Shown: positions 4,404 through 24,793, counted from the stretch's first letter. The stretch is DNA of 64,000 nt from Amphiscolops sp. MND2022 (GCA_964187785.1 OZ076421.1:11718001-11782000); one strand, 5' to 3'. Made by a program: numbers and translations. The notes: generated from the letters alone by a model not told the origin.

Positions 4404-4597
4404 TTTTGTAATCCCTTTAGTTTAGGCATACCGAACTGAATCAAGTACCCAAAAACAGTAAAAAATCAATAGATTGAAAAATTGGACTCACTGGTTATCT
4501 GGTTTAATCTGCCTGGTTCTCCGTTTTTAGATGGAGAACCTAAGCCTAATTGTTGTGATAAACTTATTAAATAGTTTCCGGTTATACGAAAACTTGA

Positions 4598-5449
4598 TGA
4601 TGGTTCTCACAAGAAGTGCACTGGTCTCCTCTTCCAACAGTGATGGGACAACTCAACTGGGTGGAACATGTGCTGTGGATCATGGACTCTGTTCTGTATG
4701 TCATGGATCGCAACAAACGAGGGACTGGATTCAATGTGAAAAATGTTCTCACTGGCTTCACTCTCAGTGTCTGAAAATACCAAAGGAAGTATTCGTTTAC
4801 TTATCCTCGTCTGAAAATTTCTCCTATTTTTGTGATTCGTGTGTTAGCAAAAAATCAGCCTTTGATGACTCAACTGAAAATGCTAAACTAGATGAACTTA
4901 AAAAAGATATCAAAACAATCGTCGAAAACGTCATTGAAGAAAAGTTGCCGAACAAAATTCCTATATCTACGAAAGAACCTAAAACACGAGATCGGCATGT
5001 ACCTGAAACGACCATAACTGAGGACAATAATTATCATTACAAAATCAGAATATCCGGAATTGAGGAAATGTATTCCAAGTTTTTCATAGATAGACAACTG
5101 CATGATAAGTCCGAAGTCGAAAAGGTTCTTGATGATTTAAATTGCTCCGGAAATGTTATTGAATCTCAACGACTTGGGAAATTTGATACAAATAGAACTC
5201 GGAACCTACTTGTAACATTTGGATCTGTATGGGATGCTCGCAAAGTCATCGCAAAGGCCATCGAGAAAAAATATTTCCTAAACAAAAGGGTTTTGATCAC
5301 CCCTGAACTGTCCCCAAAGGACCTTTTACTGGAAAGACAACTGTTAGCCAAACGTTACGAATTGATCAGGAGTGGCATAGATCGTGGCCGTTTGAAAATA
5401 AAAAAAATTGAGACTCTACAAAGACAACGAACTGGTAGAGGTGAACTGA
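4598..5449 (+). CDS. LINE ORF1 with PHD finger; +1 frameshift in the A-run at ~5399-5407
   Basis: CSVC...WIQCEKCSHWLHSQC...YFCDSC is a PHD finger. Removing one A gives LKIKKLRLYKDNELVEVN-stop (TGA 5447-5449), matching the C-terminus of the neighbouring LINE ORF1. Confidence 0.85.
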
Positions 5450-5459
5450 CTAGAAAATT

Positions 5460-8285
5460 ACGAAAATGTCCACCGCATCTTTCTTTTAAACTGCCGCAGT
5501 ATCTTATCCCTAGAAAAAAGACTTCACTTATCGTGTATTCTCCAATCAAGATTACCTGATATTCTCTGCCTTACTGAAACCTGGTGGGATGAATCTTCTT
5601 CAGACAATGCTTTTCTCACAGCTGCCTACTCAGTCATAGCAAAAGCCGTGCGTGAAACAAATCAGCATGGAGGTGTGGCTATTATGGCAAAAAAAGAACT
5701 GGTTGCATCAAAAATAGAATGCTTGGACAATACATTTTGTTGTGTTATATCAATTGATACCTATGGAATTATTGTTTTATACAATCCTCCAAACCCTAGT
5801 GAGTATCGTGTTCCTGATGATGTAATCTCAAATTGCTTAATTGCTTATCCTCGGCCTATAATTTTCTCAGTAACGCTTCCATTGATAAAGTATTAATTAT
5901 GGGCGATTTCAACTTACCAAACGAGGATTGGGCACAGTTCCCAGCGATCAGTACAGAATATTTCTGTGAAACCGAAAAATTCCTTACTGCTAAAAATTTC
6001 ACCCAGCTTGTAAAGGAACCAACCCACAAAGATGGTAATGTCCTTGACCTGGTATTTACAAACTATGACGAGCCTGAAGTTCTTGATATTGAAAAACATC
6101 CAATTTTTTCTGATCATTTCAGCATATCTGTGGGTATCCCTAAAAACTCTGAAACAATGTACACACAAACTGACCTCAAACAATACAGTCTCGCAGCAAC
6201 CGACTTAAATTCGATTGACCTAACACTAGCTCAGTCACTATTCTCGTTCGAACTAGACCAAAATTCTGTCGACTTCATTGCGGACTGGCTGATTTCATTT
6301 CAAAACATTCTCAAACAGTTCTTAGTTAGCAAACGGCAAAAGCGAAAAATGTTGCCGGATTACTTGAGCTCTCACAGTATTCATCTCTTCAACTGCCTCC
6401 AAACAGAATTAAAGCAACTAAATGGCCTCAACTTGAAAAATTATATGAAATACAATACTATCTGTAAAGAACTTGAAAATTCTATTGAGTTGGACACAAA
6501 TGTATTCCTCGACAAGTTTTGTGCCGTAAATAGTGATGTAAATGATTGTTACAAACTGATTAGAAAACTCAAAAGTTCCGACATTCCGAAGACAATGATT
6601 GATCCCAAAAAGAAAAAAATTACTGGAAGTTCCAAAATTGGAAACGCCTTCAATCAGTATTTTGGATCAGTATTCAATGCTTCTGACGATACATTCACCG
6701 ATTTTACTGATATTGTACTGAATGATGTAGAACTATCTACCGAAATCGCAAAAGAGGCTATAGATTTATCAACTGATGGCATTGGCCCTGATGGTATTCA
6801 TGGTCAAATTTTACGAAAGTGTTCAAACAGTCTCTCAATACATTTCTACAACCTATCAAAGGTTATCGTAGAAACTGGAGTGTATCCTACATCCTGGAAA
6901 AAAACCATTATCACACCCATATTCAAAGAGGGATTGAAAAATGAGATAGCCAACTACCGTCCAATTGCTTCTTTGAGCAAACTTTCACTCGCATTTGAAA
7001 GAATTCTTTTCAGGAGCATTTCCAAGCATCTACAGGACAAACTATCCTCCCATCAATTTGGTTTTCGAAAATCCCGATCATGTATCATCCATTTACTGTC
7101 GTTCTTTGATAAAATCTTTGAGTGGATCGATTCCAAAGAAAAAGCCTTTGCAATCTATTTGGATTATTCTAAAGCATTTGATCGAGTCCCTCATTCTATA
7201 CTACTGAAAAAACTACGATCTCTGGGTCTGGGTGGATCTCTACTCAAACTAATAGCTTCATATTTGCAAAACCGAGTGCAACAAGTTAAAATTGAAAACT
7301 GTCAATCAGAAGAGTGTCCTATTGCAAGTGGTGTGCCCCAAGGCTCAGTGGTCGCCCCGCTTTTCTTCATTGCGTATATAAATGACCTGCCCGAGAATTG
7401 TGAGTGTGTTCCATTTCTATTCGCTGACGACCTTAAACTGGCAAGTTCATCTCTGTTCGAGCTTCAGAACGATTTGTTATCACTAATGAAGTGGAGTGAA
7501 GAAAACAAACTCGACTTTAACTTGCAGAAGACGAAATTATTACACTTCAGTAAATCAAAGATGCAATGTGATAACCCTGTCCTACACATGGGAGAAAATG
7601 ATATCTATCCTACAACAAAGAGTATTCGTGATCTTGGTGTCTGGGTCTCTCCAAATTTGACATGGACCAATCACATAAATATTAAAATAGCAAATTGTTA
7701 TAAACGCCTAGCCATGTTACGTCGGAACCTTCCTAAAATGCTTAACCCTGACATGAAATTTAAATTGTACCGCATCTACATTTTACCCGCACTTGCTTAT
7801 GCTTCAAGTGTTTGGCATCCGAACAGAGGAGACTTTAAAAAATACAAAGGCTGCAGCGGATCTGTTTCAAGTGGATTGACTATAGGAGCTCATTTCATCA
7901 ACTTCTTGACAAATATCACCATTTACCGATCTCTTTACATCTTCAAATGCAGGATCTGCTACTGTTCAACAAGCTCACAATGGGCCTTTATGACTTCACC
8001 ATATGGGATTATGTGTGTTCAAATCAACACAACAATAATTATGAGCTCAGAAGTAACACCAAAAATATTTTCATGTCTGACTACACACGTTTAAAGTGTA
8101 CACGGGAATTTTTCTTCAATCGAATCATCAAACTTAGCAATTTTGTACAACAAGAATACAACATTAAACTGCCAAACCACCCTGCCGCATTTGAATCCGA
8201 TCTAAAGAGAATTTACTGGAATCACTACAAAACTAAATATGAAGATAGTGGCTGTAAAATGTTCCTGAAGTGTAGCTGTTGTTAA
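5460..8285 (+). pseudogene. LINE ORF2 (AP endonuclease + reverse transcriptase) with two frameshifts
   Basis: LLNCRSI, ILCLTETW, HGGVAI, MGDFN, SDHF, YRPIASL, QFGFR, LDYSKAFDRV, GVPQGS, YINDLP, FADD; ends CSCC. Frameshifts at an 8-bp duplication (aattgctt x2, ~5830-5845) and an A-run (~7837-7843). No in-frame stops once these are corrected. Confidence 0.92.
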
Positions 8286-8329: not shown

Positions 8330-9200
8330 NNNNNNNNNNNNNNNNNNNNNNNNNNNNNNNNNNNNNNNNNNNNNNNNNNNNNNNNNNNNNNNNNNNNNNN
8401 NNNNNNNNNNNNNNNNNNNNNNNNNNNNNNNNNNNNNNNNNNNNNNNNNNNNNNNNNNNNNNNNNNNNNNNNNNNNNNNNNNNNNNNNNNNNNNNNNNNN
8501 NNNNNNNNNNNNNNNNNNNNNNNNNNNNNNNNNNNNNNNNNNNNNNNNNNNNNNNNNNNNNNNNNNNNNNNNNNNNNNNNNNNNNNNNNNNNNNNNNNNN
8601 NNNNNNNNNNNNNNNNNNNNNNNNNNNNNNNNNNNNNNNNNNNNNNNNNNNNNNNNNNNNNNNNNNNNNNNNNNNNNNNNNNNNNNNNNNNNNNNNNNNN
8701 NNNNNNNNNNNNNNNNNNNNNNNNNNNNNNNNNNNNNNNNNNNNNNNNNNNNNNNNNNNNNNNNNNNNNNNNNNNNNNNNNNNNNNNNNNNNNNNNNNNN
8801 NNNNNNNNNNNNNNNNNNNNNNNNNNNNNNNNNNNNNNNNNNNNNNNNNNNNNNNNNNNNNNNNNNNNNNNNNNNNNNNNNNNNNNNNNNNNNNNNNNNN
8901 NNNNNNNNNNNNNNNNNNNNNNNNNNNNNNNNNNNNNNNNNNNNNNNNNNNNNNNNNNNNNNNNNNNNNNNNNNNNNNNNNNNNNNNNNNNNNNNNNNNN
9001 NNNNNNNNNNNNNNNNNNNNNNNNNNNNNNNNNNNNNNNNNNNNNNNNNNNNNNNNNNNNNNNNNNNNNNNNNNNNNNNNNNNNNNNNNNNNNNNNNNNN
9101 NNNNNNNNNNNNNNNNNNNNNNNNNNNNNNNNNNNNNNNNNNNNNNNNNNNNNNNNNNNNNNNNNNNNNNNNNNNNNNNNNNNNNNNNNNNNNNNNNNNN
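8330..9200. other. Assembly gap (N run)
   Basis: Continuous N bases. Confidence 1.
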
Positions 9201-9218
9201 GAAAAGAGAGGAGTGAGA

Positions 9219-9430
9219 CCCCTTTTTCAGACCATGGCCAAAACACTTTTATTACCTAAATCCGACTACCTTTTTCAGACCACATCTGCTAGGACCCTTT
9301 TCCAGACCATATCTTCCTTGATTCAGACTAACATTTAGAGTGTGGAAAAGGTATTTCCCCTTTTTCAGACCAGCTGTTTTACTCTCAGGCTGACCATAAG
9401 AGTGAGAAAAAGGTGCTTCCCTTTTTCAGA
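9219..9430 (+). repeat. Cluster of CCTTTTTCAGACCA-like motifs (possible subterminal repeats of a DNA element)
   Basis: About five variants of (c)tttttcagac(ca) within ~210 bp next to the gap. The 16-mer cctttttcagaccatg recurs at ~22584-22599. Confidence 0.55.
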
Positions 9431-10367
9431 ACAAATATGAGTTGAATTCTTTTGTTGAATTATGAAATAAAAATGGTAATTATACGCTAGTAATTGTTCT
9501 AAGTGTTGGCAATGCTTGTTTGTTACACTACGCTGTCTGTATGGAAGGAAAAAAATGGCATTTAACATTTTCAATTTTGAGCTTCAATCTACTACTGTAA
9601 TTATATCAAATTATATCAATGCTAAATTATATCAAATAGGAAAATTCAAATTCACTGTTTCTGAAACAAGGACGTTCCGAAATTCAAGGCAATTTTTTGA
9701 AATATCATCAACAATTTACAATATTTGGGCATCAATCAATCATTCAACAGTGAGTGGCAATTAATTTCATAAAAACGGTAGGGTAGCAAACTTTTCAAAC
9801 CAGCAGAGAAAATCTTCGAAGCTGAAGTTGAAAAATATAGCAAAGCAAAGTCACGATAGAATCAATTTCTTAAAGGGACTGTTGCATCAGGGAGCAATAT
9901 TCTATGGATAAAATGATTTACTTATTCGTGTAAAAATTTAGAAGCAAATTTCGATATCGAATTAGGAAAATAACTAGTGACAAAGTGATTGAAACTCCAA
10001 AAGTTTCTTCAGTGGAAATAATATCATCTACAAAATTTGGGATCTTCTTCCTCCCGCCCCTGGTAGAAATTTTCTGCTATTGTCATCAGGAACCATAATT
10101 ATTTCAATAAATTTCAATTGATGTCATAATTTTTGACCGACTGTTGGAAAAACAAATTTAAAGGTGGGGTGAAGAAGATCCAACTTTTGCAACCCTAATT
10201 GGAAGCACTGATTTAGTACTACTCAATTTTGTCCCCAAAAGGAAAATCCATTGGCCAGACGAATGCAAAATAATCAAATAAAACTAGACATTCAAGAGAT
10301 TCAGCAGCAAAACAAAATACAAGAAACATAGCAATGACTTATGTTATACAAGAAACATAGCAATGAG

Positions 10368-11737
10368 TTATAACTTCCGAGTGAACTTCCGCTTCCTCTT
10401 CCCTCGGAATCCAGACTTATATCCCTTCCTTTTCAGTCCACCTTCTTGTTGCCCGGTGGGAACAAGCCAATCCCTCTCCTGTGTCCTGCAAGTGGCAGGT
10501 GTGTCGATCATGATATATGATGACAGAAGGTTGGAACCACAATCAGCCACAGAAATGACCGCATGAACTACCCGCGCCGGGAGGTAAACGGTGTCGCCCA
10601 CGTTCTGGTGAATTATCCAATATTCTTCAATATTGTTCTTCACTTTGGCGATGAATTCGTGAAGGGTCCAATTTCGCCTGATTCTGAACCTTGCTTCCTT
10701 CTGGTTGCCTTTGAAAATGAACCAGTATTTTTCTCCTCGTAATAGCGTCGCTATTACAGGGTAACCTGGCGCAGGATCTTCATCAATGTGAAAGGATCGG
10801 AAACCTGAAACAAATACTTCTCAGAAGAACTGCATATAAAAATTGGCTATCTAGAGCTCGTTTTTCAAAATACCATAAGCTCTGAGCCCTTTTAATCGGA
10901 ATTAAATTTCTACTGATCGTTAATGATATTGCTATTTTCAATACTTTGCATTATAGTTTTATTTTCAATAAATTCAAAACTTAGGGGGTGGGATACTAAA
11001 TAAGAACAAATTATTGCATAAGACAATTAACATGTATCTTGCTGATTGTTAATGTTGCTAATTATAATCCCCTAAACCTCCGCTAAAAATTATGACAAAA
11101 TTCAATTGTCAAAATTTTTAAAAATAAAAACTTAGGGGCGGACAGACCTTCGAAACAGCCAGAGACTTTTTTTATAAAAACGTCAGTAGCGGCTTTTGGA
11201 GCAATAATTAATAATAACAACAATGTAATAACCTTTCTCAGAAATGCAAAGTAGGTTCAAATCAACAACTTCATCCGGTTGTAGCGGGGGTAAAATATTG
11301 AAGAAGGCAGGATCAGCGGATAGATTGCCTTCACTATCCAAGGGGTACACGGCTTCTGTTATTATGCTACCTTGGAACACTGGATCATTTCGGGTGACCG
11401 CCTCACTCTGTAACTCTGGACCAAGGCTCTCAATTGTTGAAGCGTCTTCTCCTTTCCTCTGTAACCTGGCGTCTTTGTAGCCAACAAGTGGTTCTCTCAC
11501 TACAGCAGGTTGAGTTTCAGTGTGGGGATCTAGATCTTCTGTTGTAAAAACCTGTCCAAAACAAACGGCAGGATTGTAATTTAGCCACTGAATAAATTCA
11601 GCCACTAATTCATTAGGGGTTTTCCGGCTAGCACCACTTCTAGTCGAGTCTCTGGTGATTTTTGGAGAAAATTCACTGTCCGAAGGTGAAGAAGAATCAC
11701 CATTTGCGCTGAATGTTTTAGCACTGGTGGCGTTCAT
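10368..11737 (-). CDS. Two-exon JmjC-domain protein (Fe(II)/2-oxoglutarate dioxygenase, putative lysine demethylase), 313 aa
   Basis: Exons 11737-11233 and 10804-10368 joined by a phase-1 GT-AG intron (11232-10805). The join reads LNLLCISEK-G-FRSFHIDED...LLRGEKYWFIF...IHQNVGDTVYLPARVVHAVIS, giving the HxD, GxKxW and distal His JmjC motifs. The start codon is inferred. Confidence 0.82.
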
Positions 11738-11868
11738 TGAGAGTCTGAAAAAAGTCAATGTTGATAAAGACGCGTATTTGCTTTTTATTCAATGCCTAAA
11801 AATAAATATTATATTTGTAATAATAAACAAAATTATTTTAAAATAACGCAAAATGTATTACATATACA

Positions 11869-12136
11869 CAGTGAGTTCCGGATATAATTGATCCGGATAT
11901 AATAGAAGTCTGGGTATTAAAAAGTAATTCCCTGTTCCCGATAATCATAGTACTGAATAGTTCAGCTAGCTTATAATAGGGATCCGGAATCCACTTTACT
12001 TATTCCAGTCTGTTGCAACTGGATTCTGGCAGTCAAACAAATCAAAACCAGCCAAAAATGGAAAAAGTTGATGCGTCTGTAAGGCTCTTGACCTTTGCTC
12101 TGGTCCCATGGCATTCACTATTGCCGGAACTCACTA
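11869..12136. mobile_element. MITE with short TIRs (Tc1/mariner-pogo-like)
   Basis: agtgagttccgg at 11870-11881 and its reverse complement ccggaactcact at 12124-12135; non-coding interior. Confidence 0.65.
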
Positions 12137-12591
12137 TAATAATAAACATGAAAAAGACATAATTTTGAGTGATAAAATCTTGTGCGTTTACTCAGTTATA
12201 CGAGAAGCGCGGAAGATTGTAAAACGTGTGAATTTTTTTAAAACACATATTATTTCTTGAATGCATATAACGTGTCATGACATATTTTGTTGATCGATTA
12301 TGGCCGTGACTTGGTTACTTTCACGCCGTCATACGAAAAGCACGCTAGTTCTACGAATATAAAACACTTGACCCCCTTGCGCAGCTAAGTAATACAGAAT
12401 CAAAACTTTTCTTCTCGGTAACTTTATTCAGAGAACATATACGTAATGATTGGAGAATAAATACAGCCAAAAAGTAATACAAAATCAACAAAACAAATTA
12501 CAACGGAGTTGCAAACAGGGAATTCAATTCTGCCTATACGTTCAGAAACTACTTTAATCGAATATTAAATATATAAAAAAAGTCAATATTC

Positions 12592-13070
12592 GTGATGTTG
12601 TCCTCCCTCTGAGGGAACTCATTCCTCAGGAGTCGAACAACCATCACGTTAATCAAATATTCCTTAAAAATACCTAATCTTGATGTTGCCCTCCCCCTGA
12701 GGGAACTAATTCCTCAGGAGTTGAACAACCACCACTTAAATCAAATAATAACAAAATGTAATTATTCGTGATGTTGGCCTCCCTCTGAGGGAACTCATTC
12801 CTCAGGAGTCGAACAACCATCACGTTAATCAAATATTAAATAGAAATTATTCGGTATGTTGCCCTCCCCCTGAGGGAACTAATTCCTCAGGAGTTGAACA
12901 ACCACCACTTAAATCAAATATTAAAAAGAAATTATTCGGTATGTTGGCCTCCCCCTGAGGGAACTCATTCCTCAGGAGTTGAACAACAACCCCTTAAATC
13001 AAATATTCATAGAAATTTATTCGTGATGTGTGCCTCCCGCCAAGGGATCTGATTCCTTGGAAGTTGACCT
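12592..13070. repeat. Array of six ~86-bp repeats, each with an imperfect hairpin
   Basis: Units start at ~12592, 12682, 12768, 12855, 12940 and 13023. Core ctgagggaact(c/a)attcctcag; unit 6 has ccaagggatctgattccttgg. Units 1/3 and 2/4 alternate as subtypes. Confidence 0.95.
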
Positions 13071-13133
13071 ACCTCAAAAACGAGTGTCGAATTGAATACC
13101 CTGGACATAAACATCAAAAAATTCTTTTTTAGT

Positions 13134-16100
13134 TCACCATGAACTTGGATATCCTGCGTTCTTCCATTCATAAATGGTTTTTAGAACAAACTGCACAGTT
13201 CCGTACTTCATTAACTGATTTTTGTTAACTTCTTTTGTTAACTGGGCAATGGTCTTTTTTCCCAATCCCTTTTCGCGCCTCACGAACTCAGTCGCTATCA
13301 CAGCGTACGTTTCTTTTTTGAATTCCTGGCGCTGTGGGCGACTTCTCAAAAAAGTACAAACTGCACTCTCGGTGGGAATACCATCTTTTATGCCCAATGA
13401 GCTCCCCAGGGGGAGGTTAACTTTCAAGGGCGCCTTTTTTTTCTTCTTTGCCGGAGGTTTCTTATAATCTTCACCACTTGAGTAATCCGAACAGGAGTCA
13501 TTCTCGGAGCTGATCTGGTTCTCTTCGTCAGAACTCTCACTTAAATCATCATCTTCATTGATCTCTTCTGCTTGAGCAGCTACAATTTTAATTTGATCCT
13601 CGGTTTCCTCTGAGACGTTGATGATTCGATCTACAGCATTTGAAGTTTCGCATGCGTCCATTTCTTTTTGGATCATCTCATAATGTTTTTGCGCCACATT
13701 CCTAGAATGACCGATATGCCGGTCGAGGGAGCGCTCAATTTGTACATCTTCGAGTTTTTGGGCAAAAATGGTGCACATTGATTTTCTCCAAGCGTTTGTA
13801 TTAATCGGAACCTCGAGATTGAGGTGTCGCTCCAAATATTTAGACCATTTCCCCATGATGTTTCTTTTCACAGGATCATTCCCACTTTGATCAAGTTGTT
13901 GAAATAGATAACTCTGATGAGCTGCATTCAAAAGTTTTTTTATCCGGAAGAACCGGACGAAAGTGAAAAGTTCGTTCTCAGAAAGAATAATTCGTCTGAC
14001 TCCCTCACTCTTGAAATTTTTGTTGGTATTGCGCAGTTCGTTTGTCATTTCGTCGATGATAGTTCTGATGCCAGCGTTTTCTTTCAGTCTGCTTTTCAAC
14101 ATTTTCTCATTGATGAGTTTAATGACGTACAAATTCTGTTTGACATGCTTGACATTGGCGAAAAATTCTTTTCTGATGTACAAAGCGCTCGAAATTCGAC
14201 ATACATTTCGTGCACAGATTACAAAGATCAGACAAAACTGTAGATGTCTGTATTCACGTTCTTTATTCGAGTACGTCTCTGTCTCAAAACGATCGAGAAG
14301 TTCATACAAATAATTGACAACAGCTTGATAAACACCAATAATTTGCTCTTGACTAGCGACTTGAGTTGAACTAATTTCTTTGGCAGTTGCCTTTCGGAAC
14401 GGGAGCTCAGAGTTGACATGCTGTTGGTATCGATTCAGACCACGCTCTATCTGGTCACACAATTGAGCAAAGGTATTCATTGCTGAAGGCTCAGAGAGAC
14501 GACAAAATGTGACGAAGTCTTTTAATTCACGACATAATTGACTCCTTGTTTGGCCAGCCTTCACTTTCTGTTCAGTTTTCAATTTGGAAAAATAAACGCT
14601 GATAGTATGGGCACTAGTAAATCCCTCCGTTACAACAATGAACAGTTTAATCTTTTTAACAAGGTTGGACAATCTCTCCATGGCATATCGTCGTGCACCT
14701 TTACCCTCGTCGAAGTCGACTTGCTTTTCTTTACACCAAGCATCGATCTTTTCCATGAAATTAAAGTTTTTGCTGAATTTCTTGACTTCCCTTTCCAGTT
14801 CACTCAATTCAGAATTATCTGTTTCGCCTGGGGTGAGAAAACTCTCGGGGAGATCTTTAACTTTGGCTACATTTCTTATATATGCTTTATGCTCAGGGAA
14901 AGGGTGTTTGTCTTTGCGATGGAAAACTCGGTTACAGTTATCTTTAGTACAGATGTACATGCTTTTTTTCGTCTTCTTGTTTTTGGTCTCAAAATAGTGG
15001 AGTTTAACGACTGCATTCAAATGTTGACCTTCGGAATAATTGTGGGCGCGCTTCAAATGTTTAGGGAGACACATATGTGTTTTCAGTTCCAGCTTACAAA
15101 AGTGGCACATAACCATGTAAGGAGCTTTGCGAGGATCTGGTTTGTCGACTCTATCTTGTGAACTCTGTGACGCTTCAAGAGTTCGGATTGCAGATCGAAT
15201 GGCTCCGTAATCAAAGGCAACACTTTGATAATTGCCACTTCTCTGTCCCATTTCTAGGTGTGGCTTCTCGTAGTGCGCATTTTTGAGATGCATCCGAATG
15301 TCCTTTGGGTTGCTGCCCAGAATTATTGTTTTGCATCTGAAACACGACAGTACTTTTGAGTCATTGAATTGAAAAGCGCTACTGTTTGATTATCAAGTGA
15401 GATATTGTGATTCCGGTTTCGAAAACAACAAAGAAATATTCAGGTCCTGACATATTTATTTAACTTATAGAAGTCTATAGTAGGTGAAATCATTCACCAA
15501 CAACCAATAAAGCAATCACTTGCTCCATAAATCATTTCTTATTTTCTTAGACATGCAAGCATACGATTTGTTGCCGATATAGTTAGATAGATAAGATTAA
15601 TTCTCTTTGACAAACAAACACAACATAGTGCCAAGCAGGAATGATATGTGAAGAAATTACAGGTTCATTAGCCCTTAACGTTGAAAGTATAGTAAAAAGA
15701 ATATAACACACCTGAGGCAAATGGTTGCATTGATATCCTTCTTATCCAGTATTTCAAATCGTCGGCAGCATTGCTGGCCGAGATAGTGGTTAATTACACC
15801 TGACTCTTCGGAAAACTGCTTCTCACAATAGTAGCAGCTGTACCGCTCTTCTTTTCTGTCTTCTTTTTCATCATATAATTCATCAGAGATTTCGCGATCA
15901 AATTGCCCTTCATCATTGCTTCGGTTTTCGTAGTTCATTTCTACGTCGAAAGTTTCCACTGAAACTGATACTTCTCTTTTCCAGGTATCTTCTTTACTAA
16001 CTTCACAATCACACAAGATTCGGAACTCGTTTCCATCTGGTTTTGTGCTCAGGTCACTTTGAATTTTTTTTGATGCAGACTCGAAAGTATACGTCTGTAT

Positions 16101-16808
16101 ACATACTGATCGCTTGCCATAGGAATTATTTTCGCTCGCTATCACACTGCCAACGTTGAAACAACCCGAAAAACTCGTCGTACTTGAACTCGGATCACCG
16201 ATTTGAGAAAATTTTGAATTCAAATCTACAGCACGGACTTGAGTCATGACATTCCTTTGAAACTGTTTTCTGGAACTGAAAGTTGTGTCGTTTCCCCCAA
16301 GCTGAACGTCCCAATAATAACTGTCTAGGTTGCATTGAATATCTTTCTCTGCAACATTTACTACTTTTTTTGAGCGCCAAGGAAACGATGCACTATCTCC
16401 GTACCCACAAAGGTAATCATACCGAATTTCTTGGCCTCTCTCGATATCACGCTTGGCTTTCAAACCAATGTATTTCACGCCGGAAATGAGAACTTCATAA
16501 GGACGGGCGTTGGGATTTTCATGATCGTCATTGATGTACCTAGCTAGTCCTGAATTAACGTCGAATGCATCAATGTACTCACTGGAACTAGGTATAACAA
16601 AAACGTAATCGTTTTCTTGCGTGGGAACCCCTTGAAAGCGTTTTCCCCTGTAAAAAAGTAGAAAATCGCCTCCCTTGAAGTCCTTGTCTGCAAAAAGACC
16701 AAATCCGACAGAGTTGCTGATGTGCTTCACGACAAAGCTGTCTTCTGGATCTTTTGCAATGAAGTCTTCAGGTCGTATTGATTTTCTCGTGGAGGATCTG
16801 CGTGTCAT
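13134..16808 (-). CDS. Two-exon SET domain + C2H2 zinc fingers + tyrosine recombinase fusion protein, 1099 aa
   Basis: Exons 16808-15712 and 15336-13134 joined by a phase-2 GT-AG intron (15711-15337) that completes a C2H2 finger (CLR|CKTIILGSNPKDIRMHLKNAH). SET motifs: GFGLFA, FLLFYRG, LARYINDDH..PNA, EIRYDY, FPWR. Recombinase motifs: VCRISS, KNFK, NAWRK, IGHS..VAQKHY. Confidence 0.88.
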
Positions 16809-17204
16809 GCTTCACTGAAAAATATGCAGAAATCAAGTTCCTGAAAATTTGATGTAAGTCAGAAAAAGGGAAGTAATGGTCGGAAAACGGTGAGTAGGAG
16901 AGTAATTAGTATATTTAGTATTTAATCAGTATTCCAAACTAGATTAACGACGTATTTGAAACAAAAACGTATTGTAATGGGTTATCACTAGGGCCGGTAA
17001 AAAGTCACGGAAAATTGTGGCAAAATCACGCGGAAAAATCACGAAAAATTACGAGTATTAAACATATATAATTACACTCCACTCAATCAAGACCAAGATA
17101 TTTAATTGAATGCAAGGAAGGTGAATAAAAAATGATATTGATTGTTATATTTGATTTGTCAGCAATCGTAGTCACATTTCTGTTTCATCTATATACAAAA
17201 TCAA

Positions 17205-20200
17205 AAAAAGGCTCAGCACCAACAACAGAAAAATTTCCAACAGAATGGTGGAAGTGGCGGTGATTACCAGGATTACTACCAAGAGTCCTACCAAGATGTG
17301 TCACCACATATGTCGGCACCAGGTAGTTATAGGGGTGGCGGTTCTTTCTATGGTAGACGAACTTTTATTCGTGGCTCCGGGAGAAGACAACATATGTTAC
17401 ATACAACACAATGAACCTTTTTCTTCTGAAAGTGCAATCGCAGATGATGGTGCTCCTGCAAGCAATCATTACAACCGAGCTCCCGTGTCTTTTCCTCATC
17501 AGAAGTTTTCACACAGAGGCGCTGCGAATTCTAGTTGTCGACCGAGAGGCGCTATGGGACGGGGTAAACCCACAGATATGGATTCCAACAACAACACCGC
17601 TTTTTCTCCTTCCATGAGATCGCGACTTGGTCCCAAGTACTCTCCCAAGCAACAATCTTTAACTGAAACTACTTCCATTATTTCTGATGTTCCGAAACCG
17701 TGCGGAACTTATACAAAGAAGGAAAAGAAGTCGGACGTCTTTTGGATCAGCGATTTGAGATTCGTTGAATTTAAGCCGATTTCAAAGCCAAATGTATAAA
17801 GGTGGAGTCTTCCAAAAATATAACGTTACGAGTAACAAGCGGCCAAACGAAAGAACAACCTACAGACCTCGATTCAATGTTGCAGAGCGTCGGCTCGTCT
17901 CTGAAAAACATCTCGGATCCAGAACCGGGGAGACTTTGTGTGGCCAGAATCCATATAGCGTAACTTTCATAACGTACCTTTAGTGTACTTTTAATTCCAA
18001 TAAGTGTATTTCTTTTCATATCTATTGAATTGCCGAGAGACGCGTTCGAAGAAATGATCATGGAAAAAAGTTCTCCAATACCTTTTTCAGTCATCAACGT
18101 CTTGGCTTGCAATAATTTCTTTTCGCTGACAATCCATTTTGAAACAAACAGTTCTCTTGTGTGCAAAATGCTTTGCCGCTAGATCCTTCATAATGTTGAT
18201 TCCCTGTCATGATATGGGCAATTCTGGTTTGCAATCCGAAATGTTTCAGGCTTTCGCAATGAGTGGCGGTGATTACCAGGATTACTACCAAGAGTCCTAC
18301 CAAGATGTGTCACCACATATGTCGGCACCAGGTAGTTATAGGGGTGGCGGTTCTTTCTATGGTAGACGAACTTTTATTCGTGCCTCGGGAGAAGACAACA
18401 TATATTACATACAACACAATGAACCTTTTTCTTCTGAAAGTGCATTCGCAGATGATGGTGCTCCTGCAAGCAATCATTACAACCGAGCTCCCGTGTCTTT
18501 TCCTCATCAGAAGTTTTCACACAGAGGCGCTGCGAATTCTAGTTGTCGACCGAGAGGCGCTATGGGACGGGGTAAACCCACAGATATGGATTCCAACAAC
18601 AACACCGCTTTTTCTCCTTCCATGAGATCGCGACTTGGTCCCAAGTACTCTCCCAAGCAACAATCTTTAACTGAAACTACTTCCATTATTTCTGATGTTC
18701 CGAAACCGTGCGGAACTTATACAAAGAAGGAAAAGAAGTCGGACGTCTTTTGGATCAGCGATTTGAGATTCGTTGAATTTAAGCCGATTTCAAAGCCAAA
18801 TGTATAAAGGTGGAGTCTTCCAAAAATATAACGTTACGAGTAACAAGCGGCCAAACGAAAGAACAACCTACAGACCTCGATTCAATGTTGCAGAGCGTCG
18901 GCTCGTCTCTGAAAAACATCTCGGATCCAGAACCGGGGAGACTTTGTGTGGCCAGAATCCATATAGCGTAACTTTCATAACGTACCTTTAGTGTACTTTT
19001 AATTCCAATAATTGTATTTCTTTTCATATCTATTGAATTGCCGAGAGACGCGTTCGAAGAAATGATCATGGAAAAAAGTTCTCCAATACCTTTTTCAGTC
19101 ATCAACGTCTTGGCTTGCAATAATTTCTTTTCGCTGACAATCCATTTTGAAACAAACAGTTCTCTTGTGTGCAAAATGCCTTGCCGCTAGATCCTTCATA
19201 AAGTTGATTCCCTGTCATGATATGGGCAATTCTGGTTTGCAATCCGAAATGTTTCAGGCTTTCGCAATGAGTGGCGGTGATTACCAGGATTACTACCAAG
19301 AGTCCTACCAAGATGTGTCACCACATATGTCGGCACCAGGTAGTTATAGGGGTGGCGGTTCTTTCTATGGTAGACGAACTTTTATTCGTGCCTCGGGAGA
19401 AGACAACATATATTACATACAACACAATGAACCTTTTTCTTCTGAAAGTGCATTCGCAGATGATGGTGCTCCTGCAAGCAATCATTACAACCGAGCTCCC
19501 GTGTCTTTTCCTCATCAGAAGTTTTCACACAGAGGCGCTGCGAATTCTAGTTGTCGACCGAGAGGTGCTATGGGACGGGGTAAACCCACAGATATGGATT
19601 CCAACAACAACACCGCTTTTCCTCCTTCCATGAGATCGCGACTTGGTCCCAAGTACTCTCCCAAGCAACAATCTTTAACTGAAACTACTTCCATTATTTC
19701 TGATGTTCCGAAACCGTGCGGAACTTATACAAAGAAGGAAAAGAAGTCGGACGTCTTTTGGATCAGCGATTTGAGATTCGTTGAATTTAAGCCGATTTCA
19801 AAGCCAAATGTATAAAGGTGGAGTCTTCCAAAAATATAACGTTACGAGTAACAAGCGGCCAAACGAAAGAACAACCTACAGACCTCGATTCAATGTTGCA
19901 GAGCGTCGGCTCGTCTCTGAAAAACATCTCGGATCCAGAACCGGGGAGACTTTGTGTGGCCAGAATCGAGTTGGACCAGATTTTTCCAATTTGCGGTCTA
20001 TTGAGAAACAGGACTTCGATTACAGTAATTTCGAATTGGACAAACTTCTTTTACAGCATATTGAAAAAAGTACATATCATATCTTTCTTCTCAGCTAGAG
20101 CGCGTACTTAATATTTGGAAGTTTTCAGATGATTGTTGAAAATGCTCTATGGATGCGGGGCTCCGCGGTTTGACTTGCTCCTTGAAGTTCTCACCAAAAC

Positions 20201-20815
20201 TGGTTAGTGCAGAATACGTTTTATTTCTCTCTCTCTCTCTCTTGCTCTCAATATTTCAAATGTGTTTTTCTCTTATATACTGTCATATCTGTTTGAATTC
20301 TTCCCTTCATTCACTTATCAGTAGTAATCAATAAAAAATGACATCGGTTAGCGCCATTAGACTTTAGGATAAGTTTTAAAGTTTACAGTTCAATAAAGGA
20401 ATGTGGGGTCGTTAAATGATTGAGGGGTGATTAGGAGATTAAGAGACTAATTTACACACGCTATCTCACTTGGACTTTGTTTTTAGCATTCCGATCGTGA
20501 CATGGAATGTTACAGTACAACTGAGGAAGAATTTGCCAAATTTATTCATGAGAATTGTAGTGTTGACGCCGTGTTCACCAATTTCATTCATCGAGAAGGT
20601 ATCGATTGGTGGTATTGTTTCCAAAAGTTTAGCTCAACCGAAGATGCCAAAATTGCTCTGGAGTTTTTGAAAGCCAGAGATTTCAAGGGAAAAAGAATCA
20701 GAGCCATGTATGCTCGCAAGAAAGAAACAATGCCTTCTTAACAAAAGGCTCAGCACCAACAACAGAAAAGTTTCCAGAATGGTGGAAGTGGCGGTGATTA
20801 CCAGGATTACTACCA
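17205..20815 (+). pseudogene. Rearranged fragments of an RRM-containing RNA-binding gene (possible Tudor-like segment)
   Basis: 20486-20741 gives WNV.YSTTEEEF...WYCFQKFSSTEDAKIALEFLKARDFKGKRIRAMYARKK (RRM with a frameshift). It continues into QKAQHQQQK..QNGGSGGDYQDYYQ, which is duplicated at 17205-17281. EPGRLCVARIELD near 19940 resembles a Tudor start. Confidence 0.55.
17253..19967 (+). repeat. Tandem amplification A-B-A-B-A, period 1008-1009 bp
   Basis: A is ~698 bp (17253-17951, 18262-18959, 19270-19967) and B is ~310 bp. The copies differ by only a few substitutions and one 1-bp indel, and the ORF track repeats every 1008 bp. Confidence 0.97.
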
Positions 20816-21059
20816 AAATTACTACTACTACTACTGCAGAAGCTTTTTGGGAGGAACTTCATTGGCCTACAGAAACGACTAAGAGCACAACAACTGAGTG
20901 ATGATGGCGTACATTACTTACCGGAAGGCTATAAACGGATCAGGAACGCAATAATTAAATTTCTTGCGAGTCGAAGAGTAATTCCACAATACAATTAATG
21001 AACATCGTTCCACAGCATCTTTTAACTGCTTGTTGTCAATTATTATGCTGTTATTTCTA

Positions 21060-21922
21060 AGAAGTAGTGGACAGCTCTGAGCGGATATTTGTTGAAAAGT
21101 GTCCTGTGGATGTTTTGGAGAAGTTGATGGCGTCTGACAATTTACAGGTCCAATATAAAACTCAGGTTTATAGACTGATGATGAAATGGGGTGAAAATGA
21201 TGTTCAGAATCGGACAACGAAAGATTGTCTAACTGAGCTGTTCAAATTCATACGTATAGGCTGTTTGCCCAACCAGTTTTTGATGGATGTAGTCACGGAT
21301 AATAAACTCATGTTGTCCCAAAAAGTTGCATTTCGCCCACAAAAAGTGCCATTCGGTTCCATCTGGGATATCATGGTGGAAGTAGCAGTGAGAGCGGTAC
21401 AGATTGTTCTGGATGCGGAATTGGAAGATTCCAAAAAAAGGGATTAAGAAAAGTGGTTTGGAACCCTATCATCTGATACCACGAAACTCATTTCATGCCT
21501 TTGTTGTTTTCAGTAATGATGATAATTTCGAGCGTTTTCCGACGTAGACCAACAAATGGCAACTTTTGCAAATCAAAATTTTGTTGGACGGATTTAGTCT
21601 GCTTTATCTTGATGGCAAAACATATCTTTTCCTTGTAGTTAGATCAGATGACGACTATGAAGCGAAACAAGAAATGTACGACCCAATCTCGTCAAAGTGG
21701 GAATCTTTGAAGCCCATGCCGACTTGTCGTGTTTGGTTCGCTTTGTGTTTGATGGATTCCAGATATGTATACACGTTTGGAGGATACAACGCTGATGGTT
21801 TGTATGTAAATACAGTTGAAATGTTGGAATACACGTTTGAGCAAAAGAAGTGGTCTGATTTCTGGACGATGCAGCCAGTGAAATGCACCAGTGAAATCTA
21901 CCAGTTGCAGGGGTTGAATTGA
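21060..21922 (+). pseudogene. BACK + Kelch-repeat (KLHL-like) gene fragment
   Basis: DVLEKLMASDNLQV...VYRLMMKW...LFKFIRIGCL (BACK). EMYDPISSKWESLKPMPTCR and YVYTFGGYN...NTVE (Kelch). No BTB domain; frames are broken. Confidence 0.8.
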
Positions 21923-22026
21923 ATTAATACGTCAATCAATGACAATTTTTATCTGAAAGACAACAGACATGATAGGTATAACCTTCTTATTTACCACGTC
22001 TTATTCCGTTCCCTCGATTTACGAAA

Positions 22027-22568
22027 GGACCGCAACTAAGGTCTAAGGAATAAAATCTAAAGAAATTTCGTCACTAAGATCTAAAGAACTAAGATCTAAA
22101 AAGCATGCACCGTAACTAAGGTCTAAATTGAAATAGAATAACGTCTAAGGAAACATGTGGTGTCATGTACGATGTATGCACGTTCGCCCTCACCGTCGCA
22201 AAGACCAGCTCCCACTACGATCGCTTCGCAATCTCCGTTCCCGCTAGGCCTTTGCTCCTGTTCGACCTCGCTTAACAAGATGGGAACATAGGCGGCCCCA
22301 AGGGGCCGCGGGGCACTAGAGGAGTTGGGGACATATCCAAGTCACGTTTTATGCATCAAGTCATTTCCAAATTGGGAATATCATCCGAAAACGGGAATAA
22401 TGTCTGAAAAAACCGGAATAACATCAGAAAATTTAGACTTTAGTTACAATTCAGGATCTGGCATTCTCTAGATCTTAGTTACGAAAAATGACATTTAGAT
22501 CTTAGTTCTTTAGATCTTGATTACAGAAGTGCGTTTCGATCTTATTCCTTAGATCGTAGTTTGTGCCC
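22027..22568 (+). mobile_element. Foldback/MULE-like MITE with CTAAGATCTA subrepeats (copy 1)
   Basis: Imperfect long TIRs built from ctaagatcta units; an inverted copy lies at 25833-26285. Confidence 0.8.
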
Positions 22569-24416
22569 ACCTTTTCGTGAACACCTTTTTCAGACCATGA
22601 CTGCCAATTCGAAATTTTCATATATAAAAAAAACATGAAAATGAAAATATATATCTCAAATTATGTATCTGCGCAGATTCAAAGAGTCCCTCAAAAACAG
22701 CCCCAGACATTGGCAAACAGCTAACATCCTGAAAACTTATAGATCAACTCTGGAAACCGATAAAACTCTTCTGCATCACTTTGATATATGTTTTTACTTT
22801 GTAATCCTAACGACTCCATTTTATACTTTTTCAAATATCAATTTGTAAATCATGGCCAGCAATTAATGGCTTCTTCGATCAAATTGTATTTTTTATTGGC
22901 TTAGAGAAATATATTAATATATAACCGATAAAATGTCTATTTTGGAAGCGAAAGCATTTGTAAGAACAATATGAATTTATGATGATCTGTTGATTTTTTT
23001 TATCTGAAAGTATGTATGATCCAATCAAAATAATCGAACTCAGCGATACATCCTATTACCTCATATTCAACCAAGAGGAGCTCCGGTTGTAGTTTGAAGA
23101 CATTTTCCGGCGTTATTTGCGGCACACAACTTAGTGCGGTGTAAATGTAAAAGGCATGAAACATTGTAAGTCCAAACTGCCTGCATGAGATACTTCCAAA
23201 GTGTGGCTGTTCACCATTTGACCGTATATTAAAAAAATTGATAACCATAAAAGAATTGGAAGATGTAGAGCACCGAATTTGAAATTCAGTAAGTTGATTA
23301 TGACAGGAAGAAAACATTGCAGCGCAAACTTATCTACGATTTCGAACTTAGCAGATTATTGATTATTCTGCTGAAAGATGCTGTTTACCACTGATTCAGC
23401 TTACTATTGTGCCACTGCCGCTAGCAATTATTACGGTTCACGCAGACACCGATATTGTTTTGATCTCACACAAATGTATAACGAAATTTATATCGAAATG
23501 TATGTCAAATACATAACAAAAAATTTATATAAATATATCCCTGGTTTTCATTCCAAAGTCATTAATTGTTGTTTTAAACTGTATCCGGTTTTTGATTCAC
23601 TTTTCTTTTTCTGAAGTACGCCTCATGAGACTACTTTCTGCAGTGAGAACAAAGTTTGTTAACGTTGACTGCTTGTTTTGTAGGTGAATTAGGATAGACC
23701 ATTGTCTTTGAAGGAGATCTATATCGACATTCAGTAGTACGTGAAGAAGGAAAAATTATTGAAAAAGCTTTCTTTTCATAGCTCTGCACATGTTTTCAAG
23801 CGAGGATACGAAATATACTTGATAACAAAGGTTTTGTCAAAAACGCTTTTTTCGTCTTCCAGCTGGATCGTAAACTCACCTGTTTCGAACCAAGGATTAT
23901 GGACGAAGTAATCAGTATTCTACTCATGGCGACACTTCAACAAACCCATTTGGGTATGCAGTCCCTATCGAACGGAGAGTTACTGTGTGCAATACGAGAG
24001 CTGTAACTTCTTCCTACTGAGAGATATGGTTATCACATTTTTGGTGGTTTTGGCCAACTTTTGAATGTCTACTCGTAGAAAAATTTAAGTCTTCATGGTG
24101 AACTGTTAAATCGGTTCTGAAGTTAGTTCATAGTATGAACGTTCATCTCTGCTCAAGATCTTGCAATTAGGCCGTGGAAATTGGTTGTTTTTGGATTTTT
24201 AGAGGATGGCCTGGCATTTAACCAGAAGCTTTCACCACATGAGGTTACTTCAGTGTTTCATTATCGTAGGAGTTGGTGAAAGAAGATAGCGATGGCAAGT
24301 ACCTATCTTATCAACTGCAACTGGATATTGTTCATTCACAAAAGGCCCGAAAGTCCTAATTGTTGACTAAAAAAAATGCGGCTCCTTTTAGTTCATTTCC
24401 GCAAGTGCTTACCTTT

Positions 24417-24793
24417 NNNNNNNNNNNNNNNNNNNNNNNNNNNNNNNNNNNNNNNNNNNNNNNNNNNNNNNNNNNNNNNNNNNNNNNNNNNNNNNNNNNN
24501 NNNNNNNNNNNNNNNNNNNNNNNNNNNNNNNNNNNNNNNNNNNNNNNNNNNNNNNNNNNNNNNNNNNNNNNNNNNNNNNNNNNNNNNNNNNNNNNNNNNN
24601 NNNNNNNNNNNNNNNNNNNNNNNNNNNNNNNNNNNNNNNNNNNNNNNNNNNNNNNNNNNNNNNNNNNNNNNNNNNNNNNNNNNNNNNNNNNNNNNNNNNN
24701 NNNNNNNNNNNNNNNNNNNNNNNNNNNNNNNNNNNNNNNNNNNNNNNNNNNNNNNNNNNNNNNNNNNNNNNNNNNNNNNNNNNNNNNNNNNNN
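24417..24793. other. Assembly gap (N run)
   Basis: Continuous N bases. Confidence 1.

Follow-up and report, generated by a model that had tools for sequence, protein, structure and literature searches.

The window analysed here, 64 000 nucleotides of the Amphiscolops sp. MND2022 genome (GCA_964187785.1 OZ076421.1:11718001-11782000), contains a copy of a young, multi-copy Crypton-like DNA transposon of ∼15.2 kb, intact as far as it is readable. Its predicted transposase is a putative tyrosine recombinase fused to a SET domain (a domain of histone-methylating type); the element sits in ACT-repeat microsatellites and carries a second gene, for a JmjC (demethylase-type) protein. We found no published description of such an element.

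A sequence-only reading of the window had reported two co-oriented, spliced, stop-free genes, SET-C2H2-tyrosine recombinase and JmjC, separated only by a hairpin array and a MITE; this observation was confirmed, and both gene models held exactly as stated. Its interpretation, a mobile DNA element that remodels chromatin at its own locus to escape silencing or to prepare targets, was supported in part: the mobile unit was supported, while the chromatin role remains an inference. Also, three points had to be corrected. The element is much larger than the proposed span 10368-16808; JmjC is not a defining part of the family; and the family has a feature that had not been seen, insertion in (ACT)n microsatellites in a fixed orientation.

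Gene models and domain content

The SET-recombinase gene codes for 1099 aa without a stop. Its exon junction (ATICLR/CKTIILG, the slash marking the junction) aligns without a gap to an intronless homolog of 1121 aa (P0001). The N-terminus matches Pfam SET with 42 bits against a cut-off of 22. The domain is closest to KMT5A/SETD8 and KMT2; it is followed by a variable linker, three or four Cys/His zinc fingers, the predicted tyrosine-recombinase domain and a conserved C-terminal tail. In the SET domain the GxG motif (GFGLFA), the NPN motif and the E-I/V-R-Y-D/N-Y motif with the catalytic Tyr (here EIRYDY) are conserved across lineages with 31-72% identity; however, the NH of the cofactor motif, usual in active SET enzymes, is replaced by ND[DE] in all lineages.

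The JmjC gene codes for 313 aa in two exons separated by a GT-AG intron of 428 nt. Exon 2 carries FHIDED, GEK and VVHAV, that is HxD, a Lys and the distal His, in register with the Pfam profile and with homolog P0012. As to the choice between demethylase and hydroxylase, the best solved relatives, PHF8/KDM7, were not significant (E 1.3), the Atlas (language-model) neighbours mixed JMJD4-like hydroxylases with JHDM1-like demethylases, and there is no reader domain. One JmjC relative, in another species (locus L011), lies inside an LTR retroelement.

One flank of the element is a LINE, and the flank was characterised as far as the (TAGTAAGTAG)n tract. A LINE lies tail-to-tail with the 3′-end of the element both in the window and in L003, a copy of a related lineage (see below).

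Table 1. Features of the element and its flank (window coordinates)
Position	Strand	Feature	Observations
9201..24416	-	Whole transposon copy as far as readable, ∼15.2 kb; both tips run into N runs (8330-9200 and 24417-24793), left unfilled	L009 matches 24416..9201 in one gapless block at 99.98%; L010 and L007 match the same span at 97-99.9% but have unrelated flanks
23608..24416	-	Conserved non-coding 5′ terminal block, starting with a GAAAAAGGTA-type motif	73% identical over 815 nt to L001 47-850, which directly follows that element's 5′ (ACT)n; no reading frame is favoured
21067..21922	+	Antisense BACK + Kelch gene fragments (captured host-gene pieces)	Pfam BACK E 1e-9, Kelch_1 E 3e-7; also present in L007, L009 and L010
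17203..20825	.	Unit of ∼1008 nt repeated in tandem about 3.5 times, with plus-strand ORFs that match no family	Repeat search; three units in the window and L009, one in L010; no Pfam hit
15712..16808	-	Predicted transposase exon 1: SET domain (aa 1-150), variable linker, first Cys/His finger	Pfam SET E 1e-10; solved KMT2A/KMT5A SET domains E 4e-7; pN 0.25 against pS 0.89 versus the L001 lineage
15337..15711	-	GT-AG intron of the transposase gene, 375 nt	Kept in all four copies; 97.9% identical in L007
13134..15336	-	Predicted transposase exon 2: C2H2 fingers, putative tyrosine-recombinase domain (R366, K425, N500, R503, H529, Y538 of the 719-aa ORF), acidic stretch, conserved C-terminal tail	Homologs at 31-72% identity; pattern invariant in six lineages; spacing like XerD, Cre and lambda Int; Atlas neighbours carry PF00589
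12571..13073	-	Tandem array of 85-88-nt units (5.5 units) just downstream of the transposase stop codon, each unit with an imperfect hairpin	Present in L007, L009 and L010; other lineages have unrelated tandem arrays at the same place
11870..12135	.	MITE of 266 nt with 12-nt inverted ends AGTGAGTTCCGG / CCGGAACTCACT	Alignments to L007, L009 and L010 run unbroken across it
11233..11737	-	JmjC gene exon 1 (aa 1-168)	Identical in L009 and L010, frameshifted in L007
10368..10804	-	JmjC gene exon 2 (aa 169-313): HxD, Lys, distal His, basic C-terminal tail	Pfam JmjC 25.4 bits against a cut-off of 24; Atlas neighbours are JmjC/Cupin_8 clusters; 11 relatives among 1.84e9 representative proteins
9201..9440	-	3′ subterminal array: five GGTCTGAAAAAGG repeats, then the start of a terminal palindrome	6 matches against 0.19 expected by chance; ∼80% identical to the 3′-ends of L001 and L002a, similar array in L003 and L002b
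4531-5559		LINE ORF in one flank	
5833-8094		LINE ORF in one flank	

Copies, ends and flanks

Three more copies of the element (L007, L009 and L010) were found in ENA assembly ERZ25074608. That this assembly is of the same species is inferred from identity only. L009 is 99.98% identical to the window copy over 15 216 nt, L010 is 99.9% and L007 97-99% identical; L009 and L010 encode identical intact proteins. All four copies share ends and internal order, JmjC included, while their flanks are mutually unrelated. Co-occurrence of the genes and the array at several loci with shared ends and different flanks had been set beforehand as a test of mobility; the SET-recombinase gene, the hairpin array, the MITE and the JmjC gene do travel together. 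The window copy and L009 differ by only about 3 nt, so one could be a mis-scaffolded image of the other, although L009, L010 and L007 would still be distinct loci. Fragments at least 90% identical to the recombinase lie on five contigs of the same assembly, and a sister lineage has 14 cluster members on about 12 contigs. No circle, excision footprint or empty site was seen, and an exact look-up of a flanking ORF returned no record.

Considering related lineages, we saw that five copies (L001, from a Logan run; L002a; L002b; L003; and L008, from ERZ25071359) have the SET-recombinase fusion at 31-72% amino acid identity but no JmjC, indicating that JmjC is lineage-specific cargo. Overall the fusion is conserved in seven further proteins at 31-72% identity, several of them intronless. 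Most of the five copies also keep GGTCTGAAAAAGG-type 3′ repeats and flanking (ACT)n in one orientation. In related lineages the 3′ array is followed by a short palindrome and 8-nt imperfect inverted tips (GTGTAGCC...GGCTACAC); no long terminal repeats were found.

In nearly every copy examined the element is flanked by (ACT)n, always reading ACT on the coding strand of the element: at both ends in L001, L003, L009 and L010, at the 3′-end in L002b, upstream in L008 and on the 5′ side in the window, where both tips of the copy are hidden in N runs and its own junctions cannot be read. No (ACT)n of six or more units was found in the L007 stretch, which begins inside the element and so lacks its 5′ flank.

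Comparison of lineages showed purifying selection; pN/pS was 0.25/0.89 for the SET domain, 0.11/0.60 for the recombinase and 0.42/0.77 for the linker.

Evidence on the putative recombinase

The tyrosine-recombinase assignment rests on motif-level evidence and on language-model neighbours. The R-K-N-R-H-Y pattern is invariant in six lineages; the spacings K-R 78, R-H 26 and H-Y 9 compare with 75-91, 22-23 and 9 in XerD, Cre and lambda Int. However, the first His of HxxR is Asn, and the R-to-K spacing is about 30 residues longer than in the bacterial enzymes. All named Atlas neighbours are tyrosine-recombinase families, and the model of the nearest cluster matches XerC at TM 0.62-0.75. On the other hand, no profile method recognised the domain: searches of Pfam (with no DUF3504 or known Crypton recombinase profile at E up to 10), of PHROGs and of PDB profiles gave no match, hhalign against XerD/Cre/Int gave a probability of 0.2, and tblastn against phages gave nothing. 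Two AlphaFold models, with pLDDT 38 and 44, were unusable.

No reverse transcriptase or rve hit lies inside any copy; the complete 8-kb L001 element has a single long ORF, and both introns are kept in all four copies of the JmjC-bearing lineage, as expected of an element that has no reverse transcriptase or DDE transposase and moves as DNA.

Proposed mechanism

We consider it well supported that the minus-strand unit is one intact copy of a recently multiplied DNA transposon of the Crypton kind (a eukaryotic element moved by a tyrosine recombinase with no reverse transcriptase), with a single spliced transposase, conserved ends, (ACT)n flanks and, in this lineage, an acquired JmjC gene copied with the element; this much was established by the analysis, subject to the motif-level assignment of the recombinase. 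The mode of movement and the activities of the SET and JmjC proteins, including any writing or erasing of histone methylation or action on the element's own chromatin, are inferred. In this view, the recombinase would make or use a circular form whose junction carries a short ACT-repeat core between the inverted tips, and would recombine that core with genomic (ACT)n by conservative site-specific recombination (the Goodwin model for Cryptons), leaving ACT repeats on both sides and no target-site duplication. The zinc fingers and the subterminal repeats would probably supply site recognition, and (TAG)n tails of a LINE family would supply some of the targets. As the SET domain is kept under purifying selection in all lineages, it would be part of the transposition machinery, most likely acting on nucleosomes at the donor or target site, either by methylating them or by tethering to them. 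JmjC would most likely act in trans as an Fe(II)/2-oxoglutarate oxygenase that helps the element stay unsilenced. The chromatin role is tentative, in contrast to the structural part, of which we are confident.

One could speculate further, though we regard it as doubtful, that the element encodes a two-enzyme chromatin counter-defence: a histone methyltransferase tethered to the recombinase would write a mark in cis at the element or its (ACT)n target, and a JmjC demethylase would remove silencing marks. JmjC genes of this small family would then have been acquired repeatedly by unrelated transposon classes (tyrosine-recombinase elements and LTR retroelements) in this animal lineage because they protect elements from heterochromatin.

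Alternative explanations

A tentative alternative is that JmjC is neutral baggage, picked up once by this lineage from the host or from another transposon and doing nothing for the element. JmjC is absent from the five related copies; the element demonstrably accumulates foreign DNA (the BACK/Kelch fragments, the MITE, the tandem repeats); and the copies are too young (0-3% divergence, uniform across exons and introns) to show selection on JmjC. On the other hand, the gene is intact, with splice sites and the HxD/K/H residues, in all three young copies, and its few relatives include the one inside an LTR retroelement.

An equally tentative alternative is that the SET domain is a non-catalytic chromatin tether, used for histone-tail or nucleosome binding to choose sites, as chromodomains are in chromoviral integrases, rather than a writer. 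The ND[DE] replacement and the fusion of the domain to the recombinase, instead of separate encoding, are in favour of this possibility; conservation of the other motifs, including the catalytic Tyr, and the low pN/pS are against it.

A segmentally duplicated region that happens to contain a recombinase-like host gene and a JmjC host gene is very unlikely. Although no excision product was seen and microsatellites can promote ectopic recombination, homology among L007, L009, L010 and the window stops at the same two points, which coincide with the ends defined independently from lineages of other assemblies (L001, L008); also, one older copy has decayed beside young intact ones, and the sister lineage is spread over about 12 contigs. 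Finally, a DIRS/Ngaro-type retrotransposon that has lost its reverse transcriptase is least likely of all: DIRS-like elements also use a tyrosine recombinase and often carry a methyltransferase domain (PMC13465315), but there is no RT or RNase H in any of nine copies, the retained spliceosomal introns argue against an RNA intermediate, and no inverted or split terminal repeats of the DIRS/Ngaro type were found.

Comparison with known systems

Crypton DNA transposons (CryptonF/S/A/I; Goodwin 2003; Kojima & Jurka 2011, PMC3212892; PMC13465315) are, like the present element with its putative recombinase, eukaryotic DNA elements whose only mobility enzyme is a tyrosine recombinase, with no RT and no long terminal repeats, with short direct repeats at both ends that match the target, with an optional second gene and with a gene that can hold introns. 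Here, the putative recombinase is not detected by the Phage_integrase or DUF3504 profiles and is fused to a SET domain and C2H2 fingers, while the accessory proteins listed for Cryptons are a GCR1_C/HTH domain, a C48 peptidase and a DDE transposase; the target is a microsatellite rather than a 4-6-bp site; there is a subterminal repeat array and a JmjC cargo gene; and the size is 8-15 kb. CryptonF-1_cRei of Chlamydomonas (PMC9977147) is an active Crypton whose terminal motif matches its short target, which supports the site-specific recombination model used here; it has a 5-bp target (CAYCG) and no SET or JmjC, and its host is an alga rather than an animal.

Telomere-repeat- and rDNA-specific tyrosine recombinases occur in endogenous nimaviruses (PMC10871703); those are giant viral genomes that insert in (TAACC)n or 28S rDNA, with no SET fusion. 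Starship/Enterprise elements are tyrosine-recombinase elements that carry cargo genes; they have a Captain (DUF3435) recombinase, for which there was no hit here, a size of tens to hundreds of kb, and are confined to fungi.

SETMAR also has a SET domain and a transposase in one polypeptide; however, it is a single-copy primate host gene made by exon capture of a DDE transposase, whereas here the fusion is the predicted working transposase of a multi-copy element and the enzyme is a putative tyrosine recombinase. Transposon-borne modifiers of epigenetic marks, the TET/JBP genes in Kyakuja-Dileera-Zisupton/Plavaka elements and VANC of VANDAL21, are cases of mobile elements carrying an enzyme or factor that acts on the marks used to silence them; those act on DNA methylation, in fungi and plants, on DDE transposons, while here the candidates are histone-lysine enzymes on a putative tyrosine-recombinase element of an animal.

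Gene models and domain content

The window is eukaryotic DNA with about 39% G+C and two N runs. On the minus strand, two ORFs join through a GT-AG intron into a 1099-aa protein, and two further ORF pieces join through a second GT-AG intron into a 313-aa protein (coordinates of all features are collected in the table). The sequence-only reading had described two co-oriented, spliced genes of exactly these lengths, and this observation held. The first splice junction is not a guess, as the joined sequence ..ATICLR|CKTIILGSNPKDIRMHLKNAH.. aligns without a gap to an intronless 1121-aa homolog, P0001.

The N-terminus of the 1099-aa protein is a SET domain by Pfam (E 1e-10); its nearest solved relatives are KMT2A and KMT5A/SETD8 (E 4e-7). 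Exon 2 of the second gene passes the Pfam JmjC threshold (25.4 against 24 bits) and has the HxD, Lys and distal His residues. Between the two genes we saw a tandem array of 85-88-nt hairpin-containing units and a 266-nt MITE. Every lineage of the family has tandem arrays downstream of the transposase stop codon; however, their sequences are unrelated between lineages.

Coordinates of features in the window and in related contigs (L001, L002 and L003, contigs with SET-recombinase elements of other lineages; L006 and L011, contigs with relatives of the JmjC gene)
Sequence	Coordinates	Strand	Feature
Window	4531-8094	+	LINE with PHD-finger ORF1 and EN-RT ORF2, running into the N run at 8330
Window	8330-9200		N run
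Window	~9201-24416		Whole element, about 15.2 kb
Window	9440-9201		3' subterminal stretch with five GGTCTGAAAAAGG repeats
Window	11737..11233 and 10804..10368	-	ORF pieces of the JmjC gene
Window	11870-12135		MITE
Window	12571-13073		Tandem array of hairpin-containing units
Window	16808..15675 and 15293..13134	-	ORFs of the SET-recombinase gene
Window	15711..15337	-	GT-AG intron of the SET-recombinase gene
Window	~16862-16874		CCTTTTTCAGAC-like motif upstream of the transposase ATG
Window	17203-20825		~1008-nt unit repeated about 3.5 times
Window	21067-21922	+	BACK and Kelch-repeat ORF fragments
Window	22034-22573 and 25833-26295		MITE-like repeat of 42-nt period
Window	24416-23608		5' block of the element
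Window	24417-24793		N run
Window	24794-25612		819 nt of (TAGTAAGTAG)n, ending in (ACT)7
L001	47-850		Block directly following the 5' microsatellite
L001	2251-2263		CCTTTTTCAGAC-like motif
L001	5731-5856 and 7092-7538		Tandem arrays downstream of the stop codon
L002	2579-2591		CCTTTTTCAGAC-like motif
L002	2579-17307		Two elements head to tail
L002	17130-17307		(CTA)n at the end of the second element
L003	6323-6413		(ACT)n on one side of the element
L003	9477-9587		Stretch related to the 42-nt-period repeat
L003	15272-15568		(CTA)n on the other side of the element
L003	15651-19346	-	LINE
L006	9807-14242		Three tandem paralogs of the JmjC gene
L011	5107-19719		LTR-type retroelement with a JmjC relative

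A family of SET fusions

A search of 5.8 billion proteins with the 719-aa ORF, which holds the recombinase region, found few relatives, with identities of 72%, 58%, 43-44% and 40%, and later 37%; the full-length ones carry SET at the N-terminus. Their alignment shows four conserved parts: the SET motifs, the Cys/His fingers, a ~400-aa block that ends in ..NTNAWRK..LDRHIGHSRNVAQKHYE.., and a C-terminal tail, which in some lineages is encoded by a separate downstream exon. Between the window lineage and the 72% lineage, synonymous sites are saturated while non-synonymous change is low; pN/pS is 0.25/0.89 for SET, 0.11/0.60 for the recombinase block and 0.42/0.77 for the linker. Both SET and the recombinase block are therefore under purifying selection.

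Assignment of the putative tyrosine recombinase domain

No profile method recognized the recombinase. Pfam at E up to 10 on the recombinase region gave nothing; PHROGs on six members gave only unnamed weak hits; a profile search of PDB sequences gave 0 hits; comparison of the family profile by hhalign with XerD, Cre and lambda Int gave a probability of 0.2, both profiles being too shallow; tblastn against 50,697 phage records found no match. Two AlphaFold2 models, of 401 aa from seven sequences and of 266 aa from six sequences, had mean pLDDT of 38 and 44; they were unusable and were left out of fold searches.

The positive evidence is of three kinds. First, the residues R366, K425, N500-x-x-R503, H529 and Y538 (numbering of the 719-aa ORF) are invariant across six lineages down to 39% identity and occur in the canonical order. 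The spacings K-R 78, R-H 26 and H-Y 9 compare with 75-91, 22-23 and 9 in XerD, Cre and lambda Int, as read from their records; local contexts also look alike, CRISSAL against LRVSEL and IGHS.......Y against LGHS.......Y. Second, the ESM Atlas, a language-model resource, places the domain next to unnamed eukaryotic clusters (Mollusca, Chordata), and every named neighbour is a tyrosine-recombinase family: Phage_integrase, ResT/TelK, or ALOG + Phage_integrase. The model of the nearest cluster matches XerC at TM 0.62-0.75. The third kind is the anatomy of the element, described below. The His-to-Asn change and a ~30-residue insertion between Arg I and the Lys are real departures, and we consider the assignment likely but not proven.

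Ends, target and size of the element

The complete 8031-nt Logan contig L001 begins with (ACT)n and ends with (CTA)n, and other copies show the same pattern. In L003 the element lies between (ACT)n and (CTA)n. L002 holds two elements of different lineages (58% and 43% identity to the window protein) head to tail; the second ends in (CTA)n and starts only six bases (ACTACT) after the end of the first, which is what integration into the microsatellite beside a resident copy would produce. L008, a copy from another assembly at 31-36% identity, has 1.6 kb of (ACT)n upstream. All these tracts read ACT/CTA/TAC on the coding strand of the element.

The 5' ends read (ACT)n-AGTGTAGCCA..GAAAAAGGTA.., while the 3' ends carry several GGTCTGAAAAAGG-type repeats and a 13+12+13-nt palindrome; the tip is GGCTACAG, or close variants of it, which is the imperfect inverse of the 5' tip. 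The window has the same parts. Its 5' block is 73% identical to the block of L001 that directly follows the 5' microsatellite. Its 3' stretch, with five GGTCTGAAAAAGG repeats (six matches in the window against 0.19 expected by chance), is ~80% identical to the 3' ends of L001 and L002a (one of the two L002 lineages). Both blocks abut N runs; directly beyond the 5' N run lies (CTACTTACTA)n/(ACT)7 on the element strand, where the (TAGTAAGTAG)n tract is a 10-mer variant of the ACT repeat. The element therefore extends from one N run to the other, and the JmjC gene lies inside it.

We first read the CCTTTTTCAGAC motif, present about 45-95 nt upstream of the transposase ATG in three lineages, as an inverted end; this reading was dropped once the true 5' end was found 1.7-7.6 kb upstream. 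The motif is the reverse complement of the 3' subterminal repeat and looks like a splice acceptor; it may mark a 5'-UTR intron or a further recombinase site. A search of the whole element against Rfam gave nothing.

Copies with shared ends and different flanks

Co-occurrence of the two genes and the array at several loci, with shared ends and different flanks, had been set beforehand as the test. The 719-aa ORF is 100% identical to the protein P0020, which is encoded on two contigs of ENA assembly ERZ25074608. The copy L009 matches the whole element in the window in one block at 99.98%; the copy L010 matches at 96.8-100%, but has one unit of the internal 1-kb tandem repeat instead of the three in the window and L009. 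A copy on a third contig, L007, is 97-99% identical from the 5' block to the 3' array, with both genes frameshifted. L009 and L010 encode SET-recombinase and JmjC proteins identical to those of the window. In both, the homology stops in (TAC)n/(CTA)n tracts, and the sequences outside are unrelated to each other, to L007 and to the window.

Thus, the 13-15-kb unit, JmjC included, exists at three or four loci with the same ends and different flanks, the count depending on whether the window copy is a separate locus from L009, and it spread very recently. Fragments at least 90% identical to the recombinase lie on five contigs of the same assembly; the sister 58% lineage has 14 cluster members on about 12 contigs. 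Both spliceosomal introns are retained in all copies, which argues for a DNA intermediate. An exact look-up of a flanking ORF, made to find the window's own locus or an empty site in the ENA assembly, returned no record.

The JmjC gene as lineage-specific cargo

We found no trace of JmjC by tblastn at E 1e-2 in L001, L002a, L002b (the second L002 lineage), L003 or L008; it is therefore cargo of this lineage and not a family character. We also considered that JmjC sits on a nested solo LTR or other insertion; this was rejected as the explanation of the linkage, because the alignments to L007, L009 and L010 are unbroken through the whole 3' part. The same lineage carries other evident pick-ups in addition to the MITE. 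BACK and Kelch-repeat fragments, antisense inside the 5' part and present in all four copies, look like captured pieces of a KLHL-type host gene. The ~1008-nt tandem unit has 184-222-aa plus-strand ORFs that match no Pfam family. The MITE-like repeat of 42-nt period occurs inside and outside the element and is 97% identical to a stretch upstream of a different SET-recombinase lineage in L003; it is an abundant small repeat of this genome.

An exhaustive HMMER scan of 1.84 billion representatives with JmjC exon 2 found only 11 relatives, all short metagenome-type calls, three of which give some context. Three tandem paralogs at 38% identity lie on another contig of the same assembly (L006), with no SET-recombinase within 10 kb, next to a Copia-like element with 173-nt direct repeats. 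One at 31% identity (P0012), with the same FH.D...H residues, lies antisense between pol and further ORFs, inside LTR-like repeats of a ~13-kb retroelement of a third assembly (L011), with RVT_1, RNase H and integrase on the other strand. As to the subfamily, PHF8/KDM7 are the best solved matches, but only at E 1.3, and Atlas neighbours mix JMJD4-like hydroxylases with JHDM1-like demethylases; the role of 'eraser' is therefore a hypothesis.

Proposed mechanism and significance

The sequence-only reading had proposed a DNA element pairing a tyrosine recombinase with a lysine-methylation writer and an eraser, which remodels chromatin at its own locus; this interpretation is partly supported, since the two genes do move as one unit, while JmjC belongs to one lineage only and the writer and eraser activities remain hypothetical. 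The anatomy described in the preceding sections is what the analysis established directly; what follows in this paragraph is inference from it. Integration would proceed by conservative site-specific recombination between an ACT-repeat core at the joined ends of the element and genomic (ACT)n. This is the Goodwin model for Cryptons, supported by recent observations of an active Chlamydomonas Crypton (PMC9977147), and it would explain the ACT repeats on both sides, the fixed orientation and the head-to-tail pair in L002. The subterminal repeats and the zinc fingers are the likely recognition parts. In the window and in L003 a homologous LINE (34% identical) points its 3' end at the 3' end of the element; in L003 the microsatellite lies between them, in the window the N run. 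This suggests that (TAG)n LINE tails supply part of the targets, and such LINEs may be a main source of target sites. SET is conserved in every lineage and fused to the recombinase, so in this view it belongs to the transposition machinery; given the ND-for-NH substitution, it may methylate nucleosomes or may only bind them.

Tyrosine-recombinase DNA transposons are the least understood class of eukaryotic mobile DNA, and for animals no active, well-bounded model is known. The present family offers young, intact copies with exactly defined ends, a simple, testable target, (ACT)n, and a transposase physically fused to a domain of the histone-methyltransferase type. Two open questions thus become directly testable: how such recombinases choose sites, and whether transposons edit chromatin to their own advantage. 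A recombinase that integrates 8-15 kb into a defined microsatellite could also interest genome engineers.

Comparison with known systems

The element fails the DUF3504/Phage_integrase profile tests, and its SET fusion, microsatellite target, subterminal array and JmjC cargo are not among the features listed for Cryptons (PMC3212892, PMC13465315). Literature searches on SET fused to a tyrosine recombinase, on Cryptons and microsatellites, and on JmjC as transposon cargo found no description, although they did not extend to Repbase reports and subscription journals. An Atlas cluster of 197 chordate 'SET domain-containing' proteins has a fold like that of the window protein's nearest Atlas neighbour, which hints that the fusion is widespread. 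The JmjC cargo, with relatives in LTR retroelements, points to putative histone-mark enzymes as a recurrent transposon accessory in animals; parallels are TET/JBP and VANC in fungi and plants. For repeat-specific integration, the nearest functional parallel is the nimaviral telomere-repeat recombinases with C2H2 domains (PMC10871703).
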